Position numbers and translations under genes: made by a program. From positions 307,740-371,739 of IMG/VR virus record IMGVR_UViG_3300027985_000843: a stretch of 64,000 nucleotides of DNA. One strand, 5' to 3'. The notes beneath the pieces are model-generated. The model searched no databases. It had not been told where the DNA came from and saw only the letters and a list, made by a program, of their open reading frames with translations. This document shows positions 7,814-53,683 of this stretch, piece by piece. Position 1 is the stretch's first letter. Each line of letters opens with the position of its first letter.

Positions 7814-9070
7814 ATGAGTCTCTTCAAGACTGCGGCAGACCTCATCGCAGAAGGCAAGTCATCGGAAGCGTTCGATCTCATCCTCAAGGGCGAGGTCGTC
7901 GAAGACTCCCGGGACTTTATCGCCAACCAGCTGGGACGCGATGTCCCCTGGTGGGACCGAGCAGACATCCAGCCAGCTGGATCTCGGATGAGCACGGAGC
8001 CGGACTCCTGGATCGGTCACTCCCTACTCAAGAAGGCCATCGAGGGCGGCCCGCCTGTCCACAACAGTGAGTGGGCTGGTCAGCTCGTGGTGCCGGGCAA
8101 GCACCTGGTACAGGCGTGCGAGAAGGTGCTCGGCCTCCGACCCGTGTGGGTCCGGGGCAGCTCCATCCTGTTCGCCTCCGAAGAGACCATGCTCAAGATC
8201 TGGTTCACTGGTCGGGATAAGAATGCCTCGGCCGAGATGGTGACCTCGTCGGCGAAGTTGATGAAACACGCCTCCCAGCTCTTCGACAGATGCCTCACTC
8301 ATGAGAGTGCCAAGAAGGGACACGTCTTCACCCTCGTGGCAACCATGCACGGTTACCGTGTCGCTCAACTCGGCACGGCAGGCAATCCTATCGAGCGTGG
8401 GAACTACAGCCCGGAGACCCTCAAGGCGTACGATCACATTGCCCAGGAACTCAACGCGGAGGACCCTGACGGCCGCTTGAGCATCCTCGCGGGTGAGCCC
8501 GGGACCGGAAAGACCTACCTCATCCGAAGCCTTCTCGGAGAGTGTCCCAAGGCCGCCTTCATCGTGGTACCGCCCCAGATGGTCGAGAACCTCGGTTCCC
8601 CCGAGATGCTCCCAGCCCTGGTCAACGCCCGCGACATGATGGACGGCCCCATGGTTCTCATCCTGGAGGACGGCGACTCTTGTCTCGTGGCTCGAAAGAA
8701 GCTTGGGGAGACAGCAGCAGACAAGACAAGCAACATGAACGCCATCAGCTCCCTACTCAACCTCGGGGACGGCATCCTTGGTTCGGTGCTCGACCTGCGC
8801 ATCGTGGCGACCACGAATGCGGAGGAGATCGACCTGGACCCGGCCATCCAACGTCCAGGCCGCTTGAGCATCTACGCCAAGGTCGATGCCCTGCCGCCCA
8901 ACGTCGCGGCCGCCGCCTTGTCCCGCCTCACGGGCCAGAAGGTTGCCTTCGACAAGTCTGCAACCATTGCAGAAGTCTACAAGCGGGCTCGGGAGATGGG
9001 TTGGAAACCGGACACCAAGAAGAAGAAGGCTGAGAAGCAGAAGCAGCTCCGCCTCGACATTCTCACTTGA
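7814..9070 (+). CDS. AAA+ ATPase (single domain)
   Basis: Walker A GEPGTGKT, Walker B LILEDGD, sensor TTN, second region of homology DPAIQRPGR. Confidence 0.9.
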   Translation: MSLFKTAADLIAEGKSSEAFDLILKGEVVEDSRDFIANQLGRDVPWWDRADIQPAGSRMSTEPDSWIGHSLLKKAIEGGPPVHNSEWAGQLVVPGKHLVQACEKVLGLRPVWVRGSSILFASEETMLKIWFTGRDKNASAEMVTSSAKLMKHASQLFDRCLTHESAKKGHVFTLVATMHGYRVAQLGTAGNPIERGNYSPETLKAYDHIAQELNAEDPDGRLSILAGEPGTGKTYLIRSLLGECPKAAFIVVPPQMVENLGSPEMLPALVNARDMMDGPMVLILEDGDSCLVARKKLGETAADKTSNMNAISSLLNLGDGILGSVLDLRIVATTNAEEIDLDPAIQRPGRLSIYAKVDALPPNVAAAALSRLTGQKVAFDKSATIAEVYKRAREMGWKPDTKKKKAEKQKQLRLDILT

Positions 9071-9461
9071 TCGATGACTCGGGGAGCTTAGCGACGAGGA
9101 AGCTCCCGCCCCTCTGCCACGCCCGCTTCTCCAATCGGAACTTGAGCCCACGCTTCTTCATCGTGTCGATGACGTCCTTCATCGCAGCGTAGGCTTCCGG
9201 GTTCACGACGTCCGACAGTTTCGCCCCCGCGTCCATCATGTCGCGGGCGGTGTCGATGTCGTACTGGAGGTAATCGGAGGGGTCGATGTTGAAGGCGAAC
9301 ACCCGGGTTTGGGTGTTGAAATACCGGCGGCCCCGAGGGTACTTCTTGTGGGCTGCGTGAGCCCTCGGGCCGAGCCACTTCATGAGCTGGTCGAACTCTC
9401 GATCGGACAGCTCGCGAGCTTCCAGGTACCTGTTGACAACCCTCTCTGTGGACTCACTCAT
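9063..9461 (-). CDS. Hypothetical protein with N-terminal ERVVNRYL motif
   Basis: Track ORF, internal ATG at 9461. Confidence 0.7.
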   Translation of the reverse strand: MSESTERVVNRYLEARELSDREFDQLMKWLGPRAHAAHKKYPRGRRYFNTQTRVFAFNIDPSDYLQYDIDTARDMMDAGAKLSDVVNPEAYAAMKDVIDTMKKRGLKFRLEKRAWQRGGSFLVAKLPESSIK

Positions 9462-9521
9462 GACTACCCTCGCGGACAAGAACTTCTGTTGGTACTACGT
9501 CTCGGCGAGGGTCTGGTTCGG

Positions 9522-9905
9522 CTATTTCTCGTTCCGTACCTCGATGCCGGGTAGGGAGTTCACCCAAGCCTTGAGATCCTTGAGGTCGTCGAAGACCTGG
9601 ATCCCCAGCTTTTTGGCAAGCTCAACCTCTGCCCGCGTGCCCGACGACTTCTCCCAGCCCTTCAGGAGCATGATGGCGTCACATCTGGACATCATTTCCA
9701 GGGTGCCGGCAAGCCAGAAGCTGTCCGGCATCTCCCCGTCGTAGAAGGCTGTATTTGCATGCGGGATAAGTGGCATGACCCCCAACTTCGCCACCTGAAG
9801 CCCTAAGATTCGAGCATTGAAGATGTTACGGGCCACCTTCCAGGGGGTCTTGGCTCTGTAGGGGCCTGCAACGTACACGATTTTCATTCGGTTGATTCGT
9901 TCCAT
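9522..9905 (-). CDS. DUF4406/nucleoside 2-deoxyribosyltransferase-like protein
   Basis: IVYVAGPY...PLIPH...CDAIMLLKGWEKSSGTRAEVELAKKLG. Confidence 0.8.
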   Translation of the reverse strand: MERINRMKIVYVAGPYRAKTPWKVARNIFNARILGLQVAKLGVMPLIPHANTAFYDGEMPDSFWLAGTLEMMSRCDAIMLLKGWEKSSGTRAEVELAKKLGIQVFDDLKDLKAWVNSLPGIEVRNEK

Positions 9906-36123: not shown

Positions 36124-37545
36124 ATGGTCACAGAATCAGACCTCCTAATCCACGGGCTCTCGAAAGCTTCCAGCGAAGCCTACACGAAAAGCTGGAAAGA
36201 GTTCGAGACCTGGTGCCAGGCGAACGGCAGATCAGCCCTCCCGGCCTCTGTCGAGACCATGGTGGAGTTCATCAAGAGCCACGAAGAGAAGTGGTCCGCT
36301 TCCACCCTGAGCCGAGCTGCGGCCGCCATCGCCAAGATCCACGTCCTGTACGGGGCCAGGTCCCCTGTCCAAGACGAGGCCAAGTTCATCCTCAAGAGCT
36401 TGGAAGCACAGCAGGAGCCCAACAGCAAAAAGGCCCTCACGAAAGACGAGTTCGAGACACTAGTTAGGCACACGAGCGGGCAGTCCCTCAAAGACATGCG
36501 GGACAAGGCTATGCTCCTGTTGGGCGTCTACACGGGCATGCCCATCGATACCCTGGTGGCCCTGCAAACAGAGCACATTGTCGAAGACAACGGCCGTTGG
36601 ACCATCGAGGTCGACGACTACCGGGTCGACTTCGACTTTGCTGTTGAACCCATCCCAAGCTTGTCCGCTTGGCTGAACTTCGCGAACATCGAAAAAGGCT
36701 ACGTTTTCCGCAATGTTCGGAAGAATGATACGCTGGGAGAGGGCAGCATCGGCTCGCGCCAGGTCAACCGCCTGCTCAAGAACCTTGCCACCAAAGCGGG
36801 GCTCGACGCCAAGGGCATCTCCTACGATTCGCTTCGTCGGAGCTTCCAGAATTCGGTCGGGCAGAAGATCGCCGTGGTCGTCCAAAAAACGGTTCGGCCC
36901 CGGACCTCTCCCAGCCTCCAGCGAGCCCTCTCCGACCTGGTCGAAGTGAAGGCTCAGGAAAAGCAGCTCCTCCAGGACTGGGTCGAAGCCTCCGAACGTG
37001 CTGAGGCCCTAAGCAAAGAGCTGAACCTCGTCACGGCACAGCTCCAGCAGATCCGTCAGGCCACCCAGGCCCACACGGTCACTGCGGACAGCAGCACACA
37101 AGACCTTCTCCGGTCCCTACTCTCCGGCTCGAAAACCCCCGAGGAGTGCCTTCAGCTCCTCGCCACGGCCTATCCCGAACGGATTGTGGTGCTGCCCTCA
37201 GCCGTGGCCTCTGCCCAGAAGGCACGCGCCTTCCGCTTCACAGACAAGCTGTTGCAGCTCTTCGATAAGCTCGCAACCGTCTACTTCGAGGCCCTGGCCT
37301 CAGGGAAGGGAGATACCGGCGCATACGCCTACATGGGGTGGAGCTATGCCGCCAACGACAGCTTCGGAAGCGCGTCCGCCAAGAAGCGGCGGGTCTTCGA
37401 ATACAAGGGCCAAGACATCCTCATGGAGAAGCACCTGCGGATCGGTCAGAAGCCCTCCCCCTCCGAAACCATCCGCGTCCACTTCGAGTGGATCGCCCCC
37501 GAGAAAAAGATCGTCATCGGCTGGTGCGGCCGCCACCTGGAGTAA
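36124..37545 (+). CDS. Degenerate Cre-like tyrosine-recombinase fold fused to coiled coil and possible RelE-like C-terminal domain
   Basis: SAM-like N-terminus (W..F..WC...PAS.ET..FI...S.STL); RD.AMLLLG..TGMP (Arg to Pro); SYDSLRR (His to Asp); no C-terminal Tyr motif; C-terminus MEKHLRIG...TIRVHF.W...KIVIGWCGRHL. Confidence 0.7.
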   Translation: MVTESDLLIHGLSKASSEAYTKSWKEFETWCQANGRSALPASVETMVEFIKSHEEKWSASTLSRAAAAIAKIHVLYGARSPVQDEAKFILKSLEAQQEPNSKKALTKDEFETLVRHTSGQSLKDMRDKAMLLLGVYTGMPIDTLVALQTEHIVEDNGRWTIEVDDYRVDFDFAVEPIPSLSAWLNFANIEKGYVFRNVRKNDTLGEGSIGSRQVNRLLKNLATKAGLDAKGISYDSLRRSFQNSVGQKIAVVVQKTVRPRTSPSLQRALSDLVEVKAQEKQLLQDWVEASERAEALSKELNLVTAQLQQIRQATQAHTVTADSSTQDLLRSLLSGSKTPEECLQLLATAYPERIVVLPSAVASAQKARAFRFTDKLLQLFDKLATVYFEALASGKGDTGAYAYMGWSYAANDSFGSASAKKRRVFEYKGQDILMEKHLRIGQKPSPSETIRVHFEWIAPEKKIVIGWCGRHLE

Positions 37546-40764: not shown

Positions 40765-40801
40765 CTGCCTCGTAAAGGCCCGGCCGGTGTATCTTGGTGT
40801 G

Positions 40802-41368
40802 GTGAGTGATACGACCAAGATCCAAAGCCATCTGGAAAAGAGGCTCAAGGCGATCCAAGGCCGCCACAACTTCAATCCTCGGGTGGGCTCTCGACAGGTC
40901 AGAGAACACCCTGAACTCCGTCAGGAGTTCGGAGCTTTCCAAGAGTTGCTCAAGCTCCTGGAGGTGCTTGATCTGGACATCGCTATCCCGTACGACCCCG
41001 CTGGACTCGACATCAGAAAAACCACCAAGGTCGAAGCGAAACCGGTGTACGTGTATTTCATGCGAGAGCAGGGTGACCCTATCTGGAAGATAGGATACTC
41101 CAGCAACCTGTACCAGAGAAAGGGCGGTGTTCAGACGGGAAACTCCAACTACGTCGGCATCGTGCACAAGATCGCATGCAAGGACGTGGAGGAAGCTCGC
41201 TCACGTGAGAAGCAACTACACCGCTACTTCGAGAAGCTCAAGACGCGTCACCACAACAGCTCCGTGAAGGGAGAGTGGTATCGAATCCGACCGTCCGAGG
41301 TCACTGCCACTGTCAAACGGCTGAAGACCGAAGGATGGGATTGGTTGAAAGCAGGACGGCCCTCTTGA
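40802..41368 (+). CDS. T5orf172/GIY-YIG family nuclease
   Basis: VYVYF...KIGYSSNLYQR...VQTGN...EKQLHRYF...GEWY; class II promoter; stop abuts the cas ORF. Confidence 0.85.
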   Translation: MSDTTKIQSHLEKRLKAIQGRHNFNPRVGSRQVREHPELRQEFGAFQELLKLLEVLDLDIAIPYDPAGLDIRKTTKVEAKPVYVYFMREQGDPIWKIGYSSNLYQRKGGVQTGNSNYVGIVHKIACKDVEEARSREKQLHRYFEKLKTRHHNSSVKGEWYRIRPSEVTATVKRLKTEGWDWLKAGRPS

Positions 41369-43663
41369 ATGGCCGGAACAAAGGTGGCCTACGACCTATT
41401 GAACGGTAGGACCCATGCACATACGCATAACCCAGACGAGATGAACATGACGAAAAAGCAGTATTCGACAGCCCGCAAAGTGTCCAAGACACCCACCAGG
41501 AACTTCGTGTACGGAGTGGGCAACAAGGGTGAACAGCCCTTCCCCAAAGATATCATCCAGGACCAGTTGTGGAAGGCCCACGACTACAAGGCAACTGTGC
41601 TGTGGAACCATTGCCTGAGGGTCGACGAAGAGACCGCAATCCTGTGTGAGGTCGAACCCCGCCTGACGGAGCTGGACCAGCAAGCCAAAGAGCTGTCCGC
41701 TGAAATCAAAACCATGCGGACCGAACTGAACATCCCCAAGGGGTGTCGGGACGACTCCCCCGAGAGTGCAGCCATCAAGGCACTCACAATCCAGCGAAGC
41801 AGCATCTACGAGGAGATGTCGACGCTCCGTAAGGCGGCATTCAAGACGATCGAAGGCCCCCAGAAAGAATTCGATGAGGCGCTGGGGCAAGCCCTCTTGA
41901 AGATGGCCGCCGAACGTGATCCCAGCTTCGCCCCTCTCCTCGACGGGTGTCCCAAGGACGAAGACCCCGACGAGTTCAAGAAGAAGGTGACTCGGGCAAT
42001 CAACACCATCGGCCCGCGTAACCCCGAACGGGTTGCCTTGGTCAAACGCATGACTGACGAGATGCTCTCCAGTGACGCGGTTCCCGACTTGATGAAGCGG
42101 CTCAAGGAGGTCGAACGGCGCTGCCACGAGAAGAACACCTTGGCACGCAATAACTCCGGGTGCTTCTCCGGGACCTATCAAGCCGTCGACAGCGCCGTCA
42201 AAGACGCCATCCGGAAGTCCTACCGCCCCAGGATCCCCAAGTACGAGCACACGGGCAAGATCGGCATCCAGCTGACCAAGGGGATCAACACCAAGGGCGA
42301 GGTCGTCAAGGGGCTGCCCGTCTCCAGTGTGTTCGACACCCGCCAGAAGTTCTCCCTCGAACTGCTCCCGAACCACAAGGTCTACGGAGCTGCTGGCAAG
42401 AAGATAAAAGTGATGGCCCGGGCTCGAATCCGAGTCAAGCGAAACGTCTGCGTGGAAGCTCTCGTTGTCCTGCACCGACCCTTGCCTGAAGACGGATTGA
42501 TCAAGTGGGCCTACCTGGAGGTCAAAAAGGACGGCCTCCGAACCCGCTACGAACTCCGGCTGGTTATCGAGTTCACTCCCCAGCCCAAGCCCCGAACCAA
42601 CAGTAAGCTGCCCCTGCTCGCCATCAACCTCGGGTACCGATCCATGGATGATGGCACCATCCGACTCGCTACCACTTGGGACGGCGAGAATATCGGAGGC
42701 ATCACCCTGCCCGCCCACATCAAAGAAGACGAGGACCTCTCACGCCGGCTCGAAAGCTACGCGGGGAAGCACTTCACGTACGTCAAGAAAGAGCTGTCGA
42801 AGTGGAAGGGCAAGAACAAGAAGGACCTGCCAGAAGACCTGAAGGACTTCCTCCAGTTCAGCGGGCAGTGGCGTGCTCATGGTAAGCTCGCAAAGGCTAC
42901 TCGCATGATGGTCAATGCCTTCGTCCCGGAAGCCAGGGAGACCATCAAGCGACTGTGGCACGAGTGGCGCGTGGAACGTCTCAGTACAGGGGAAGGTGTC
43001 TTCCGTGTGCCCCGGAAGGGCAGCTGCCGCAAGGACTGGGAAAAGGAGGACCTGTTCGACAGCTGGCCCTTCCTGGAGGCTTGGTTCCAGAAGCATGGAG
43101 TCCGAAGCCGCGACGCCCGCTTTGCCCTGTACCTGGAATGGTGGCGCATCAAGGACGATCACCTCATCGGCCTGTCCAAGCACCTCCGAACCAGGTACAA
43201 GCTCAGGATCCGGGAAATCATTCGGATGCAAGTGGCCCGGTGGCGAGAATCCTACGAAGTCGTTGCCAGCAACGAGTGGGATATGCGGAAGACGGCCAAG
43301 AAGCCGAAGCCCGAGAACGACACCCGCACCCACCAAGAAAAGGCCGCCAACAGCGTCCGGCAGATCAGCGGGCCCGGTGCCGTAACTGCCTCTCTCAAGG
43401 AGTCCTTCAAGGGCCGTCTCATCAAGACCAACTCCAAGGACATCTCGAAGACGCACTTCGGGTGCAACGGAGAAGGCGTCGGTGTCGACGTGGACCGCTA
43501 CTGCGGCAAGTGTGGGAGGACCTACGACCAAGACGTCAACGCGGTCCTCCACACCTGGAAGGCCGCCAACGAAGTCCTCAACGGCCCGTCTGACCCATCC
43601 GAGGACAAGCCCCAGAAAGGTCCCGCGAAACGCTCGAAGCGAAGGTCCAACCTCGAAACATGA
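41369..43663 (+). CDS. cas12m: Type V-M (V-U1) Cas12m-like effector, RuvC probably inactive (alternative start ATG 41441/41447)
   Basis: Colinear motifs recalled from Cas12m: DQLWKAH, HTGKIGIQL, LHRPLPED, LAINLGYRSMDDG (RuvC-I D to N), ASNEWD, HFGC...CGKC zinc finger, YDQD; adjacent CRISPR array. Confidence 0.85.
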   Translation: MAGTKVAYDLLNGRTHAHTHNPDEMNMTKKQYSTARKVSKTPTRNFVYGVGNKGEQPFPKDIIQDQLWKAHDYKATVLWNHCLRVDEETAILCEVEPRLTELDQQAKELSAEIKTMRTELNIPKGCRDDSPESAAIKALTIQRSSIYEEMSTLRKAAFKTIEGPQKEFDEALGQALLKMAAERDPSFAPLLDGCPKDEDPDEFKKKVTRAINTIGPRNPERVALVKRMTDEMLSSDAVPDLMKRLKEVERRCHEKNTLARNNSGCFSGTYQAVDSAVKDAIRKSYRPRIPKYEHTGKIGIQLTKGINTKGEVVKGLPVSSVFDTRQKFSLELLPNHKVYGAAGKKIKVMARARIRVKRNVCVEALVVLHRPLPEDGLIKWAYLEVKKDGLRTRYELRLVIEFTPQPKPRTNSKLPLLAINLGYRSMDDGTIRLATTWDGENIGGITLPAHIKEDEDLSRRLESYAGKHFTYVKKELSKWKGKNKKDLPEDLKDFLQFSGQWRAHGKLAKATRMMVNAFVPEARETIKRLWHEWRVERLSTGEGVFRVPRKGSCRKDWEKEDLFDSWPFLEAWFQKHGVRSRDARFALYLEWWRIKDDHLIGLSKHLRTRYKLRIREIIRMQVARWRESYEVVASNEWDMRKTAKKPKPENDTRTHQEKAANSVRQISGPGAVTASLKESFKGRLIKTNSKDISKTHFGCNGEGVGVDVDRYCGKCGRTYDQDVNAVLHTWKAANEVLNGPSDPSEDKPQKGPAKRSKRRSNLET
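41377..41412 (+). CRISPR. Orphan CRISPR repeat at the 5' end of cas12m
   Basis: aacaaaggtggcctacgacctattgaacggtaggac, 31/36 identical to the array repeat. Confidence 0.85.
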
Positions 43664-43901
43664 CGTCGGCGAAGATACTTGCGCCGAACTTGCCACGCTC
43701 GGTGTAAGTATCACGAGCGGTCGAGTGCTCCGGAAAATTCGGGGACCTCTCGCACAGCTCCCAGGTGTTTGAAAACCCACGATTTCTCTGCCTCCGAGAA
43801 GGCTCAGTGGCGTGCTGGACATGCTCAACACTTGAACGAAATAAGAGGCTCTCGCAGACCCCGGTCTAAGTGACCGTATTTAGGGGTATTCTGCGATACC
43901 T
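43664..43901 (+). promoter_or_regulatory. CRISPR leader
   Basis: Non-coding gap between cas stop and first repeat; CTCTCGCA occurs twice; cggtgtaagta near 43700. Confidence 0.6.
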
Positions 43902-45175
43902 CTCAAAGGTGGCCCACGACCTATTGAATGGTGGGACATGCCTTCATCACCCCATTGCTGGCCTGGGCCGCACGCTCAAAGGTGGCCCACGACCTATTGA
44001 ATGGTGGGACCAGCAGGTGGGCCTCAGTGAGATGACGGCCCAAAGCATCTCAAAGGTGGCCCACGACCTATTGAATGGTGGGACGTTCCCGTTGCGGTAT
44101 GGCGGGATTGGCTTGAGCACTCAAAGGTGGCCCACGACCTATTGAATGGTGGGACGACCGGGTCAACGAACCTCAATCCTCAAAGGTGGTCCACGACCTA
44201 TTGAATGGTGGGACGAGTAGCCGTCCTGCTTGAGCACCCGAACTGCTCCTCTCAAAGGTGGCCCACGACCTATTGAATGGTGGGACTGGACGCCGACCTC
44301 ACCCTGCTCGCCGGGCGGCATCCTCAAAGGTGACCCACGACCTATTGAATGGTGGGGCTCATAGAACTGGCTCGTACGACCACCATACTCCCACCTCAAA
44401 GGTGACCCACGACCTATTGAATGGTGGGGCCAGAACTCAATCGGCCAAAGAAGCGCACGACGAAGAACTCAAAGGTGACCCACGACCTATTGAATGGTGG
44501 GGCGTGTAAACGCGTGCACTGACTCCTCCCGCGTCGGGCGCTCAAAGGTGACCCACGACCTATTGAATGGTGGGACAGGCGCACAATCCGGGATAGCTCA
44601 AAGGTGGCCTACGACATATCGAATGGTGGGACCTCAGCTCGCTGAGACCAAAGGTGGCCCACGACCTATTGAATGGTGGGACGACACGCTCCCGCTCACG
44701 GTCGTAGCCGTACTCCCCACCTCAAAGGTGGCCCACGACCTATTGAATGGTGGGACAGAAGTAACCCGATCTCACCTTCTTGGTCGGGCCGACTCAAAGG
44801 TGGCCCACGACCTATTGAATGGTGGGACGGTGATGAAGCCCCACGACCATGCTCTCAAAGGTGACCCACGACCTATTGAATGGTGGGGCAGTTGACTCAT
44901 CATCGGGAGTAGGGCCCCGCCTCAAAGGTGGCCCACAGCCTATTGAATGGTGGGACTACCGGCAGCCTTCCATGGGTTTCCCGCCCGTCACCTCAAAGGT
45001 GGCCCACGACCTATTGAATGGTGGGACGCGGTCCTCCTGGAGCCCCACACTTCGTGGGCACTATCGCTCAAAGGTGGCCCACGACCTATTGAATGGTGGG
45101 ACATCCTGCACCCCGAGGCCATCCAATGGCTACGTGATGCTCAAAGGTGGCCCACGACCTATTGAATGGTGGGAC
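43902..45175 (+). CRISPR. CRISPR array, 19 repeats / 18 spacers
   Basis: Repeat CTCAAAGGTGGCCCACGACCTATTGAATGGTGGGAC (36 bp); spacer lengths 37,38,35,23,36,36,36,37,37,20,14,38,36,25,31,35,39,37. Confidence 0.98.
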
Positions 45176-51401: not shown

Positions 51402-52036
51402 CCCGGACTAAGGCACTTGTGTGCACACGCTTAATGAAAACCCGCACCGAGCCAAATCCCGGTGCCACGGGAGAGATCCCAACCTGCGTGCCACCGGCAC
51501 AGCACAGGGCGTCGTACGCCCAGAAGGATGAACATGTCCCACATATTGCAACTGCAAAGATCTCAAGGCCCTCTCGCGGTTCAACGTACATCCTCCAGAT
51601 TTCCGGGTGGGGCCGTAATTGCTCGCGGTCTTCTCATGGGTGAAGACCTAGCCACTCTCTGGGGTGTTCGTAACCCGGATGAATTCGACCCCTTCGCCTG
51701 GGCCAAGACAGGCACCGACCCAATTGACGAGTATCTGAGGAGACATACCTGGTCCGACGAATTCAAGACAGCCATGAAGTGGGCTGCCGAAGGGGCCCCT
51801 CCAGAGCTACATGGGCCGGGTATGGATGTTGATGGTATACGGGAAAAGTGGCCTAGAGCCCTGTTGGTTGCTGCTCACGGGTATGACCGGTTCATGCGGG
51901 CCAGGTGGACCGATCAGAACTGGGAGATCTTCGATCCAGCTCCCCTTTTGACTCCAAAGCGCTCTAGCTAGCCCCACGCCCCTTCGCGCCACCATCGACA
52001 CCGCCCACTCTCACACGAACGGTGTATGGTACCAGT

Positions 52037-53683
52037 ATGACAAAACCATGCATCCAAGAGAATGTTCTTGTCACCCCCCCATCAAGCCCAAGGGTGCGGG
52101 GAGGTCTACTCCCCCGAGTTTTCAGAACCCTTCAACAAACTCTTGGAACCATGAAAATCTCCTGGCAGATGCTCTGGCTACGGGAAGCCCCCATCCGAGA
52201 CGTCCACGTCACCTCTCGCATCTGGCTCCCCCACAAGGGCTGGTCGCTCCCAACACACCCGCCTGACCACTCCACCCTCACCCTCTGCCCCGTCCGACTC
52301 GACGACGCCAAACGGTGGATCCAATACCGGGCCGACAAGCTCGAAACCGCAAAAGGCGTCCTCTGGGCTCTCGTCCGCGACCCACGCGAAGGCGATGGCA
52401 CCCACATCAACATCGCCCTCGCCTGGCTTCCAGAAGGCTACACCATGTCCGGGGGCGAGGACGACAACCCACCCCACCCGAGGCTCGACTTCCACGAGGT
52501 CCACGATCCAAAAAGTGAGATTGAAGAGTTCCTTGCTGACTTTTCTGACCCCAATACAGCAGAGGTTCCCCTCGTTGTCCCCAGAAAATGGAAGCCAAAG
52601 AAGCCTCTGCAAGAGCATAACCCTACGGCTGCCTCTCAATGGCACCCTACAAAAAACGGAACAATCACACCTCAAGATGTAGGAGTGGGATCCAAGTACA
52701 ATGCCTGGTGGGTGTGTCCTGAAGGGCATACTCACCAGGCACCCGTTTTCCAGAAGGCCCGTGCTGGTGAGCCCGGCTCACACAGACCCTACTCCAACGG
52801 GTGCCCAACATGTCACAAGATACGACGCTCATTAGGTTGGGGGCCCGGCAAAAACTGCCTGGCAGCTAGAAAACCAGAAGTGGCCGAAGACTGGCACCCT
52901 GACAACAAGCTCCGATCGGATGAAGTGGGTTGGTCTTCTCAGGCAGTTGCCAAGTGGCGTTGTAAAACCTGCAAGCACGTGTGGGAAGCCAGCATCTTCT
53001 CAAGGTGCTGGCCCTCAAGAGCAGAGCTTAGCTGCCCCGTGTGTGTACAAAAGTTGGCGGAAAACGGAGATCCGCACGCTAAACGAAGGGCGGGGACGAC
53101 GCCCTCGCTAGCTGAGAGCCTGCCTGGGCTTGCGAAACTTTGGCATCCCACAAAGAATGGCAGCTTGACCCCTGATGATGTCACAGAGCACACCACCAAG
53201 GTAATTTGGTGGATCTGTTCCGAGGGTCATGAGTGGGAGGCTCCTGTGAAGCTCAATCGGCAGCGGTGTTTACAGTGCCGTCAAGAGAAGTCTGTAAGAA
53301 AAGCTGAAAAGGTGCGAACCGCCAACCGATTGAAGAAACAACGATGGGAACCTCTTCTGCCGTATTGGGATGATCAGAACGGCCCCGTGCCCTGGACTAC
53401 ACGCCCAAGTGTCCTAAAAAGTGTGACCTGGAGCTGTCCTGAGGGTCATGTGTGGGAAGCCACCGGGCGGCTCATGTCGAGAAAACCATTGTGCCCATAC
53501 TGTTACTTCCTCAAGCACCTGAAGAACGAATGGCAAGGCTCCGGCCTCCCCGACCTGTCCAAAAGTTACTGGTGGAGGTGCTCCTGCGGGGTCGTCTGGA
53601 AAGCTTCCTTGGCCGTCAGGGTAGGGATGAGCATGGACTACGATCATGGCCCCCCTAACTGCCCGTACTGTTCTCAGCTCTAA
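52037..53683 (+). CDS. Multi-copy treble-clef zinc-ribbon (DUF4379-like) protein
   Basis: Repeated WHP.KN...P..V...WW.C..GH.W.A...CP.C units. Confidence 0.85.
   Translation: MTKPCIQENVLVTPPSSPRVRGGLLPRVFRTLQQTLGTMKISWQMLWLREAPIRDVHVTSRIWLPHKGWSLPTHPPDHSTLTLCPVRLDDAKRWIQYRADKLETAKGVLWALVRDPREGDGTHINIALAWLPEGYTMSGGEDDNPPHPRLDFHEVHDPKSEIEEFLADFSDPNTAEVPLVVPRKWKPKKPLQEHNPTAASQWHPTKNGTITPQDVGVGSKYNAWWVCPEGHTHQAPVFQKARAGEPGSHRPYSNGCPTCHKIRRSLGWGPGKNCLAARKPEVAEDWHPDNKLRSDEVGWSSQAVAKWRCKTCKHVWEASIFSRCWPSRAELSCPVCVQKLAENGDPHAKRRAGTTPSLAESLPGLAKLWHPTKNGSLTPDDVTEHTTKVIWWICSEGHEWEAPVKLNRQRCLQCRQEKSVRKAEKVRTANRLKKQRWEPLLPYWDDQNGPVPWTTRPSVLKSVTWSCPEGHVWEATGRLMSRKPLCPYCYFLKHLKNEWQGSGLPDLSKSYWWRCSCGVVWKASLAVRVGMSMDYDHGPPNCPYCSQL

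Follow-up and report, generated by a model that had tools for sequence, protein, structure and literature searches.

Among CRISPR systems, type V-M, with its effector Cas12m (MmCas12m2, GoCas12m, MsCas12m; structures 8hhl, 8pm4 and 23vw), is the model for immunity by binding alone, and is being developed for compact base editing and repression. Cas12m members with DED, HDD and NDD triads at the RuvC active site all bind DNA without cutting it (PMC11013384), and NED, DND, NDD and HDD triads have already been published in Cas12m clades (PMC10442227). In those parts of the 2023 PNAS census (PMC10691335) that treat it, V-M is tied to arrays and to no other cas genes. Type V-M also provides the best match, in sequence and in fold, to the system described here, which lies in the last 64 kb of IMGVR_UViG_3300027985_000843 (371,739 bp; listed as viral by IMG/VR), a stretch referred to below as the window. 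The system is a co-oriented four-part module, consisting of a T5orf172 (GIY-YIG-type) putative nuclease gene, a gene for a 740-amino-acid (aa) protein of the Cas12m family, a conserved leader and a 19-repeat array. Its features, in window coordinates, are as follows.

40787-41368, + strand: partner gene (193 aa); its product is helical towards the N terminus and ends in a T5orf172/MUG113 nuclease domain of the GIY-YIG superfamily, from Pfam and PHROG
41377-41412, + strand: solitary degenerate repeat in array orientation, between the partner gene and the cas12m-like start
41441-43663, + strand: gene of the cas12m-like effector (740 aa, or 764 aa from an alternative start at 41369)
42626-42628, + strand: RuvC-I, with Asn396 replacing the catalytic Asp in the motif LAINLGY, from alignments
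43271-43276, + strand: RuvC-II, with Asn611 in the homologous column and Glu612 adjoining, from alignments with relatives
43454-43534, + strand: TNB zinc ribbon (H672, C675, C688, C691), then RuvC-III Asp698, invariant columns in two alignments
43664-43901, + strand: CRISPR leader, with the motif CTCTCGCA twice (43747-43754 and 43849-43856) and the box TTTGAAAAC (43768-43776)
43902-45175, + strand: CRISPR array of 19 36-nt repeats with 18 spacers between them (expectation from 100 shuffles: 0)

Asparagine triads and phage-encoded Cas12m were already known; what appears to be new is a large, unstudied, RuvC-degenerate clade, probably a sister group of Cas12m, and the GIY-YIG gene conserved beside its members. 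The value of the finding lies in this clade and this pairing, overlooked by the preliminary description of the DNA, which had been made from the letters alone, and not in the asparagine. The shared leader motif and the solitary repeat had likewise gone unremarked there. As in V-M, a single effector stands beside an array, with no adaptation genes in the 64-kb window and no trans-activating CRISPR RNA (tracrRNA), the repeat has a 3' hairpin, and the protein combines a non-canonical RuvC triad with a TNB zinc ribbon. Unlike the V-M proteins, the window protein is at most 16% identical to Cas12m2 and GoCas12m by Foldseek (a local tblastn match to MsCas12m reaches 24%) and is about 140 aa longer, 740 against 536-614 aa, so that, as the preliminary description had stated, it exceeds the characterised members of about 600 aa; the additional residues lie in the helical REC and RuvC-insert regions. 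It differs further in forming part of a separate clade with an HCCC zinc finger and zero D-E-D members, and in the conserved T5orf172 gene upstream of the effectors of that clade.

On sequence and on its structural model, the window protein is a Cas12m-family effector with its own array. The open reading frame (ORF), taken from the first ATG, spans 41369-43663 (+) and encodes 764 aa; the first 24 codons of this reading overlap the solitary repeat, and the start is most likely the Met at 41441, which gives 740 aa, as in the homologues. A phmmer search of the PDB returned Cas12m 23vw at the top (E 3.4e-20), followed by 8pm4 and UnCas12m4a, while a profile of 40 clade members matched 23vw, 8pm4, 23vu and Cas12m2 at E 1.5e-79 to 2e-35, the next protein appearing at E 4e-5. 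The AlphaFold model, made on the 40-member clade alignment, has a predicted local distance difference test (pLDDT) score of 88 and a predicted template modelling (pTM) score of 0.82, and by Foldseek its closest structures are Cas12m2 (8hhl, E 1.1e-19) and GoCas12m (8pm4, E 1.1e-18), at target template modelling (TM) scores of 0.67-0.69, with all other Cas12 and TnpB structures at E 4e-8 or worse and target TM of at most 0.48. The earlier reading of an ORF of 740-764 aa, colinear with Cas12m and belonging to its family, is thus upheld. Among the viral structures of BFVD, only distant TnpB- or Fanzor-like matches were found. Pfam yields nothing beyond a sub-threshold match to Cas12f1-like_TNB, and NCBIfam and PHROGs nothing useful, so family libraries would miss this effector.

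That weak match is to a domain shared with TnpB, and relatives are labelled in databases as 'transposase' or 'zinc ribbon domain-containing protein'; both could be taken to mean that the gene encodes an IS200/IS605-type TnpB with a guide RNA and not a CRISPR effector. Grouping with TnpB of insertion sequences, named in the preliminary description as an outcome that would tell against its proposal, was not seen: TnpB structures stand at E 6.5e-4 or worse, with query TM of at most 0.25, against about 1e-19 for Cas12m, and Cas12m accounts for every one of the best matches, in sequence as in fold. The gene adjoins an array whose 19 repeats are separated by varied spacers, and no transposase domain was found among the window ORFs scanned with Pfam. 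Contradicted by the array, the Cas12m profile matches and the Foldseek ranking, the TnpB identity was rejected, its probability being negligible.

The RuvC site has lost two of its three canonical residues. The AAC codon at 42626, correctly read in the preliminary description as Asn where the catalytic Asp would be expected, encodes N396; the residue aligned with it is the D of AIDLGW in Cas12m 23vw and the H of VHLGW in 8pm4. In the RuvC-II column, where most relatives have E, the window protein has N611, and E612 (43274) follows one residue later; the glutamate that had been counted as retained is therefore present, but lies one column away from the true RuvC-II position. D698 (codon 43532, within YDQDVNA) does occupy the RuvC-III position, and the HxxC/CxxC zinc finger is also as described. 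By alignment, then, the triad is N-N-D with a neighbouring Glu, not N-E-D, and the site is predicted to be unable to cut DNA. Asparagine at RuvC-I, which had been singled out as distinctive, is not so: NED, NDD and DND triads are on record (PMC10442227, PMC11013384), and the residue is widespread in the clade.

Relatives were sought in two ways. A word-indexed search of 5.8 billion proteins brought up just three, which are 30-33% identical; an exhaustive search by profile through 1.84 billion cluster representatives returned 3,489. In a FastTree phylogeny of 142 of the best relatives, built without an outgroup, the window protein falls among 57-60 rows that form a clade (SH-like support 95-99), outside which lie MsCas12m, the HDD types and Rctr197k; the four Cas12m clades described by Wu et al. 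2022 have no mapping onto this outgroup-less tree. The phylogeny suggests that the clade of the window protein is a deep sister group of Cas12m, with members from metagenomes only. Two peptide patterns found no clade relatives in GTDB genomes, a narrow search and weak evidence of absence.

Comparison of 59 clade representatives with 81 other Cas12m relatives sets the clade apart. Median length is 730 aa in the clade against 661 aa in the others, and the first zinc ligand is His in 57/59 (an HCCC finger) against Cys in 67/81 (the CCCC finger of the canonical Cas12m group). RuvC-I is Asn in 45/59 and Asp in 2/59 of the clade, against Asp in 46/81 and Asn in 26/81 of the others. The RuvC-II Glu is found in 32/59 against 56/81, the remaining clade members having G, N, A, Q, P, S, L, V, R, T or K in that column, and the RuvC-III Asp in 51/59 against 78/81. 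No clade member has the full D-E-D triad (0/59), which is found in 41 of the 81 others. Outside the triad, 62 columns are invariant or at least 90% conserved across 40 members of the clade, although these share only 24-34% identity with the window protein. Judged from these alignments, the whole clade has abandoned the canonical RuvC active site while the fold, the zinc ribbon and the other invariant positions were kept.

This pattern bears on whether the locus is a decaying, non-functional remnant whose RuvC substitutions reflect loss of function. Such an account would fit the substitution of both RuvC-I and RuvC-II, the truncation of five spacers and degeneration of several repeats, and the failure to find spacer targets. 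It is nonetheless very improbable: the 740-aa ORF is intact and gives a confident model, the 62 columns are conserved at low overall identity, the zinc ligands and the RuvC-III Asp are kept, the architecture recurs in at least 13 other loci, and the hairpin of the solitary repeat is preserved by a compensatory change.

The gene directly upstream of the effector provides the second part of the finding. In Pfam, its product matches MUG113 (E 2.8e-10, 41 bits; cut-off 22.3) and T5orf172 (E 1.8e-9, 38.4 bits; cut-off 20), and its PHROG matches are to endonuclease and homing-endonuclease families. The T5orf172/MUG113 domain also occurs in the partners of the loci designated L001, L002, L004, L013, L014 and L015. 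Y90, K101, G103, R111, E141, R154 and E163 are invariant in eight partners, and the Arg and Glu among them (R111, E141) match, in an assignment made without structural superposition, those that work on phage ICP1 calls catalytic (PMC8263062). The partners share a family-specific helical N-terminal part across loci, in which, as in the remainder of the protein, a Pfam scan recognised no DNA-binding domain.

The partner lies directly upstream of the effector, in the same orientation, in 10 of the 12 clade loci reached via the Cas12 gene, that is, in the window, on the contigs of P0002, P0003, P0004, P0005, P0013, P0014, P0015 and P0026, and at metagenome locus L004. At six loci whose Cas12m relatives fall outside the clade (L005-L010, those of MsCas12m and Rctr197k among them), it is found at none (Fisher p = 0.0015). 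The reverse search, with a profile of eight partners, found few relatives; both close homologues that were looked up are followed directly by a clade Cas12 of 719 or 720 aa with Asn at RuvC-I (hidden Markov model E 1e-252 and 1e-246), so that the two directions combined give 12 of 14 clade loci. The paired loci range from 32 to 59% GC, with partners 25-42% and effectors 29-40% identical, and this wide range and these low identities argue that the pairing is old and not a recent insertion. The junction between the two genes measures -8 to +20 nt in nine other loci, often with an overlap, and 72 nt in the window; the short gaps and overlaps suggest coupled translation. An all-against-all BLASTP comparison of neighbours revealed no third conserved gene around the pair. 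In the full-text literature, no paper was found that pairs T5orf172 with Cas12, and MUG113 was met with CRISPR only in the ICP1 homing-endonuclease paper.

A four-step process would account for these features. The array would be transcribed from the leader, and the effector would bind the 3' hairpins of the repeats and mature CRISPR RNAs (crRNAs), each with a repeat-derived 5' handle and a spacer, in a process without tracrRNA. The resulting ribonucleoprotein would find double-stranded DNA flanked by a protospacer-adjacent motif (PAM) and form a stable R-loop, without a cut because the RuvC site reads Asn-Asn-Asp. In the final step, the product of the adjacent gene would be recruited or activated at the bound target and nick or cut it, so that what was a roadblock would now destroy the target, be it a competing phage or plasmid or a locus of the host. 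The first three steps, amounting to an RNA-guided, non-cutting DNA binder of the Cas12m type, are highly probable from the homology with characterised Cas12m and the dead triad. A role of the partner as the system's effector nuclease is put at somewhat less than an even chance, given that the gene pair is conserved and tightly coupled, that the residues taken to be catalytic are intact and that no targeting domain was recognised. The chain as a whole is assigned a probability of roughly 45%. More tentative again is the suggestion that the locus represents a new type V subtype, in which a dead Cas12m-derived binder and a dedicated GIY-YIG (T5orf172) cutter, carried mainly by phages, act against competing elements, with the solitary repeat providing feedback in the window lineage.

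Several points weigh against the proposed chain. Cas12m protects cells by binding alone (PMC11013384, PMC10442227), so that in principle no partner is needed, and T5orf172 genes that stand alone are, in phages, a common kind of selfish homing endonuclease, frequent at genetic-exchange boundaries (bioRxiv 10.1101/2023.03.23.533998). The partner is missing from clade locus L012 and from basal clade locus L021, the latter with only 208 nt of upstream sequence, which means that the effector can exist without an adjacent partner. The partner model (pLDDT 81, pTM 0.53) has no significant structural match, the GIY-YIG structures 1zg2 and Slx1 4xlg appearing only at E 0.7 to 3. A Mantel test did not show that partner and effector diverged together (r 0.13, p 0.30, all pairs being near saturation), and the failure to find a spacer target leaves no PAM to be inferred.

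Binding-only interference, the frequency of T5orf172 homing genes in phages and the two loci that have no partner would all fit a simpler arrangement, as would the PHROG homing-endonuclease matches of the window partner: a plain Cas12m-type silencer, with a T5orf172 gene that hitch-hikes with cas12, either as a selfish homing endonuclease or because it serves to mobilise the cassette. This arrangement is the main alternative, though considered rather unlikely. Homing genes are sporadic and recently mobile, whereas the partner occupies the same place and orientation in 12 loci, is as diverged as Cas12 itself, conserves its family-specific N-terminal region across loci, often overlaps the cas12 start, is confined to the clade in the comparison with outside relatives, and has no detected DNA-binding domain of the homing-endonuclease kind. 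The conserved T5orf172 gene upstream argues against a purely silencing mechanism, and the proposed RNA-guided binder with a separate cutter is preferred.

The organization of the array is compatible with the earlier steps of that chain. As the preliminary description had reported, a 19-repeat array begins 238 nt after the stop codon of the effector gene, and shuffled sequences gave none. In eight loci, the repeat closes with a stem of 5 bp and then AC, and the letters of the stem vary by locus (CCCAC/GTGGG, CTCAC/GTGAG, CTCAG/CTGAG) with pairing kept; judged from sequence, this layout is that of a type V 5' handle. No anti-repeat was detected on either strand of the 64-kb window with up to 9/36 mismatches, and on such grounds the guide would be of the crRNA-only kind, requiring no tracrRNA. 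The contigs of relatives usually stop 95-350 nt past the cas12 stop, at or just inside the first repeat, the usual break in the assembly of arrays; L014 retains at least four repeats, and L002 has a two-repeat mini-array.

Thirteen of the 18 spacers measure 35-39 nt, and five are short (31, 25, 23, 20 and 14 nt) and lie beside degenerate repeats. The short-spacer regions are 44156-44178, 44577-44646 and 44829-44920, with degenerate repeats at 44597 and 44647. The combination of short spacers and degenerate repeats indicates deletions within the array, the middle of which appears to have decayed and not to have grown recently. Four repeats carry the linked changes G11A and A35G, which flank the stem, a pattern that suggests block duplication or recombination. 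The 3' parts of spacer 7 (44359-44394) and spacer 12 (44683-44720), ATACTCCCAC and GTACTCCCCAC, are similar; on the reverse strand, both are readable as Glu-Tyr-Gly with synonymous differences, and the two spacers may derive from homologous genes of two related targets. Further repeats, in the opposite orientation and a few kb from the main array, were observed as extra copies or a mini-array at L004 (6060-6294, -) and L008 (10-45 and 11180-11215, -), those of L004 with a copy of the leader motif alongside.

The leader is likewise conserved. Its core, CTCG[C/A]A, is invariant in eight loci of 32-59% GC, with a TTGAAA-like box about 18 nt later, and the element stands 45-70 nt before the first repeat (loci L001, L002, L004, L008, L011-L014, L016, L019 and L021). 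The leader motif was also considered as a general phage promoter and rejected as such, matches in the window numbering 9 against 7.6 expected; because the motif is not enriched elsewhere in the window, it belongs to the CRISPR system, where it could be the promoter of the array or a site for a factor that the system encodes. A scan of the locus for sigma-70 promoters and terminators gave nothing above shuffles, and Rfam only chance-level matches in the 40.5-45.6 kb region of the window.

A site for a system-encoded factor would also suit a role of the partner on the RNA or adaptation side, either in maturation of pre-crRNA or in generating or inserting spacers without Cas1 and Cas2. The clade has long and varied arrays (the window with 19 repeats, L014 with at least four) although adaptation genes were not seen, and the site at which Cas12m matures pre-crRNA is not RuvC and has yet to be located (PMC11013384, PMC10442227). 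Canonical Cas12m does, on the other hand, mature its crRNA without any partner (PMC11013384). The window array, with its short spacers and degenerate repeats, appears decayed and not growing. GIY-YIG enzymes are, moreover, DNA endonucleases, and we know of no member that integrates spacers or processes crRNA. A role of this kind is accordingly improbable.

The repeat sequence also occurs once outside the array. Within the 72-nt junction between partner gene and effector gene, the solitary repeat differs from the consensus at 5/36 positions, and two of these changes, C14T and G32A, fall on both sides of one stem pair, converting C-G to T-A and keeping the hairpin (chance 0.026). Were partner and effector gene transcribed together, the mRNA of the operon could be bound or cut by its own effector ahead of the start codon, forming a feedback loop. 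In the basal relative L021, a repeat-like sequence ending in GGTGAGAC lies about 150 nt upstream of its cas12.

The targets of the system were sought in several ways. With up to 8 mismatches allowed, spacers of at least 25 nt have no match in the rest of the window. When the whole array was compared by blastn with 50,697 GenBank phage records and with 72,556 PLSDB plasmids, the matches were at chance level (E 0.4 or worse), and for three spacers the initial 22 nt were looked up in IMG/VR and met on this contig only. The silencing of competitors or host genes that the preliminary description had envisaged remains a proposal, because none of the spacers led to a target. Among 185,579 GTDB species genomes the repeat core does not occur, and in IMG/VR it is confined to this contig; these searches give no support to the further proposal that spacer acquisition is borrowed from the host.

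The wider content of the window fits, in part, the phage origin that had been assumed. Its ORFs are small, mostly co-oriented and mostly of unknown function, with matches to PHROG families, DUF551, an integrase-family gene, an AAA ATPase and GmrSD_N. IMG/VR lists the contig as viral, which agrees with the system being of phage type; the virion and packaging genes that would be expected to accompany it are not seen, no capsid, portal or terminase match and no tRNA having been found within the 64-kb window. This content is consistent with a huge phage, a giant plasmid-like element being the alternative. The lack of cas1, cas2 and cas4 in the window, as earlier described, is borne out by a Pfam scan of about 70 window ORFs, with zero matches, in which ORFs below about 110 aa were covered in part. 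A 553-aa protein at 52022-53683 (+) has five DUF4379 treble-clef zinc-finger domains (Pfam E 8e-49), and a tyrosine-recombinase gene of the phage integrase family and an AAA ATPase lie at 36124-37545 (+) and 7814-9070 (+), respectively. A GmrSD_N restriction-endonuclease domain and a Metallophos phosphoesterase were among the matches of the 48 ORFs in a pooled Pfam scan.

Two phage-borne systems resemble that of the window in having a Cas12m-type gene and an array with no cas1, cas2 or cas4. MvCas12m of myxophage MV-1 (bioRxiv 10.64898/2026.09.14.751636) differs in its D-E-D triad and its length of 610 aa, and the protein of Virus Rctr197k (KX853510.1) is likewise D-E-D, of 622 aa, and belongs to the canonical CCCC group, with no T5orf172 neighbour. 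In the Rctr197k record (L010; 3845-5713 and 5747-7261), deposited in 2016, the 622-aa gene is labelled 'similar to transposase' and stands beside an annotated CRISPR, and the record thus predates the 2026 claim of a first phage Cas12m. At L006, a relative of canonical type (D-E-D, CCCC), an AbiEii/DUF6036 nucleotidyltransferase gene (8995-9576) is found upstream and no T5orf172; the near-identical L007 has no such ORF, and its cas12 ORF as called extends upstream over that region. V-U24, in the part of the census that describes it (PMC10691335), has a non-canonical RuvC-I and a partner called 'HTH domain protein' (helix-turn-helix). By description only, it resembles the window clade in combining a dead RuvC-I with a conserved small partner, and is set apart from it, also by description, in that the window partner is T5orf172/MUG113 by Pfam.

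The partner itself has a described counterpart in Odn (Gp88) of ICP1, a T5orf172 DNA nuclease that is directed against a competing mobile element and replaces the CRISPR-Cas of the phage (PMC8263062). Odn and the window partner share a phage T5orf172 domain in which the catalytic Arg and Glu are retained. Odn targets DNA via its own RepA-like DNA-binding domain, whereas the window partner has no recognisable one and stands beside an RNA-guided binder.

A division of labour between a binding module and a separate enzyme is found in type I systems, in which Cascade acts with Cas3, and in type IV-A, with DinG. To our knowledge, a GIY-YIG nuclease dedicated to the system and acting in trans is not found with any single-effector type V system. 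Cas12k with a Tn7-like transposase likewise joins a binding-only module to a separate enzyme (cited in PMC11013384). If the proposed chain holds, the window system would follow the same logic of binder and catalytic partner as Cascade with Cas3, IV-A with DinG and Cas12k with the Tn7-like transposase.

Should the partner be merely a homing endonuclease, the finding would amount to a new, enlarged and phage-borne branch of Cas12m, useful but ordinary. The system would extend the short list of CRISPR systems on huge phages. If the chain is as proposed, the locus would offer a natural and separable pair of an RNA-guided binder and a small GIY-YIG cutter, a design comparable to ones that have so far only been engineered, e.g. 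GoCas12m-FokI (PMC13092967), and the clade would demonstrate a second route out of the loss of nuclease activity, namely outsourcing the cut.

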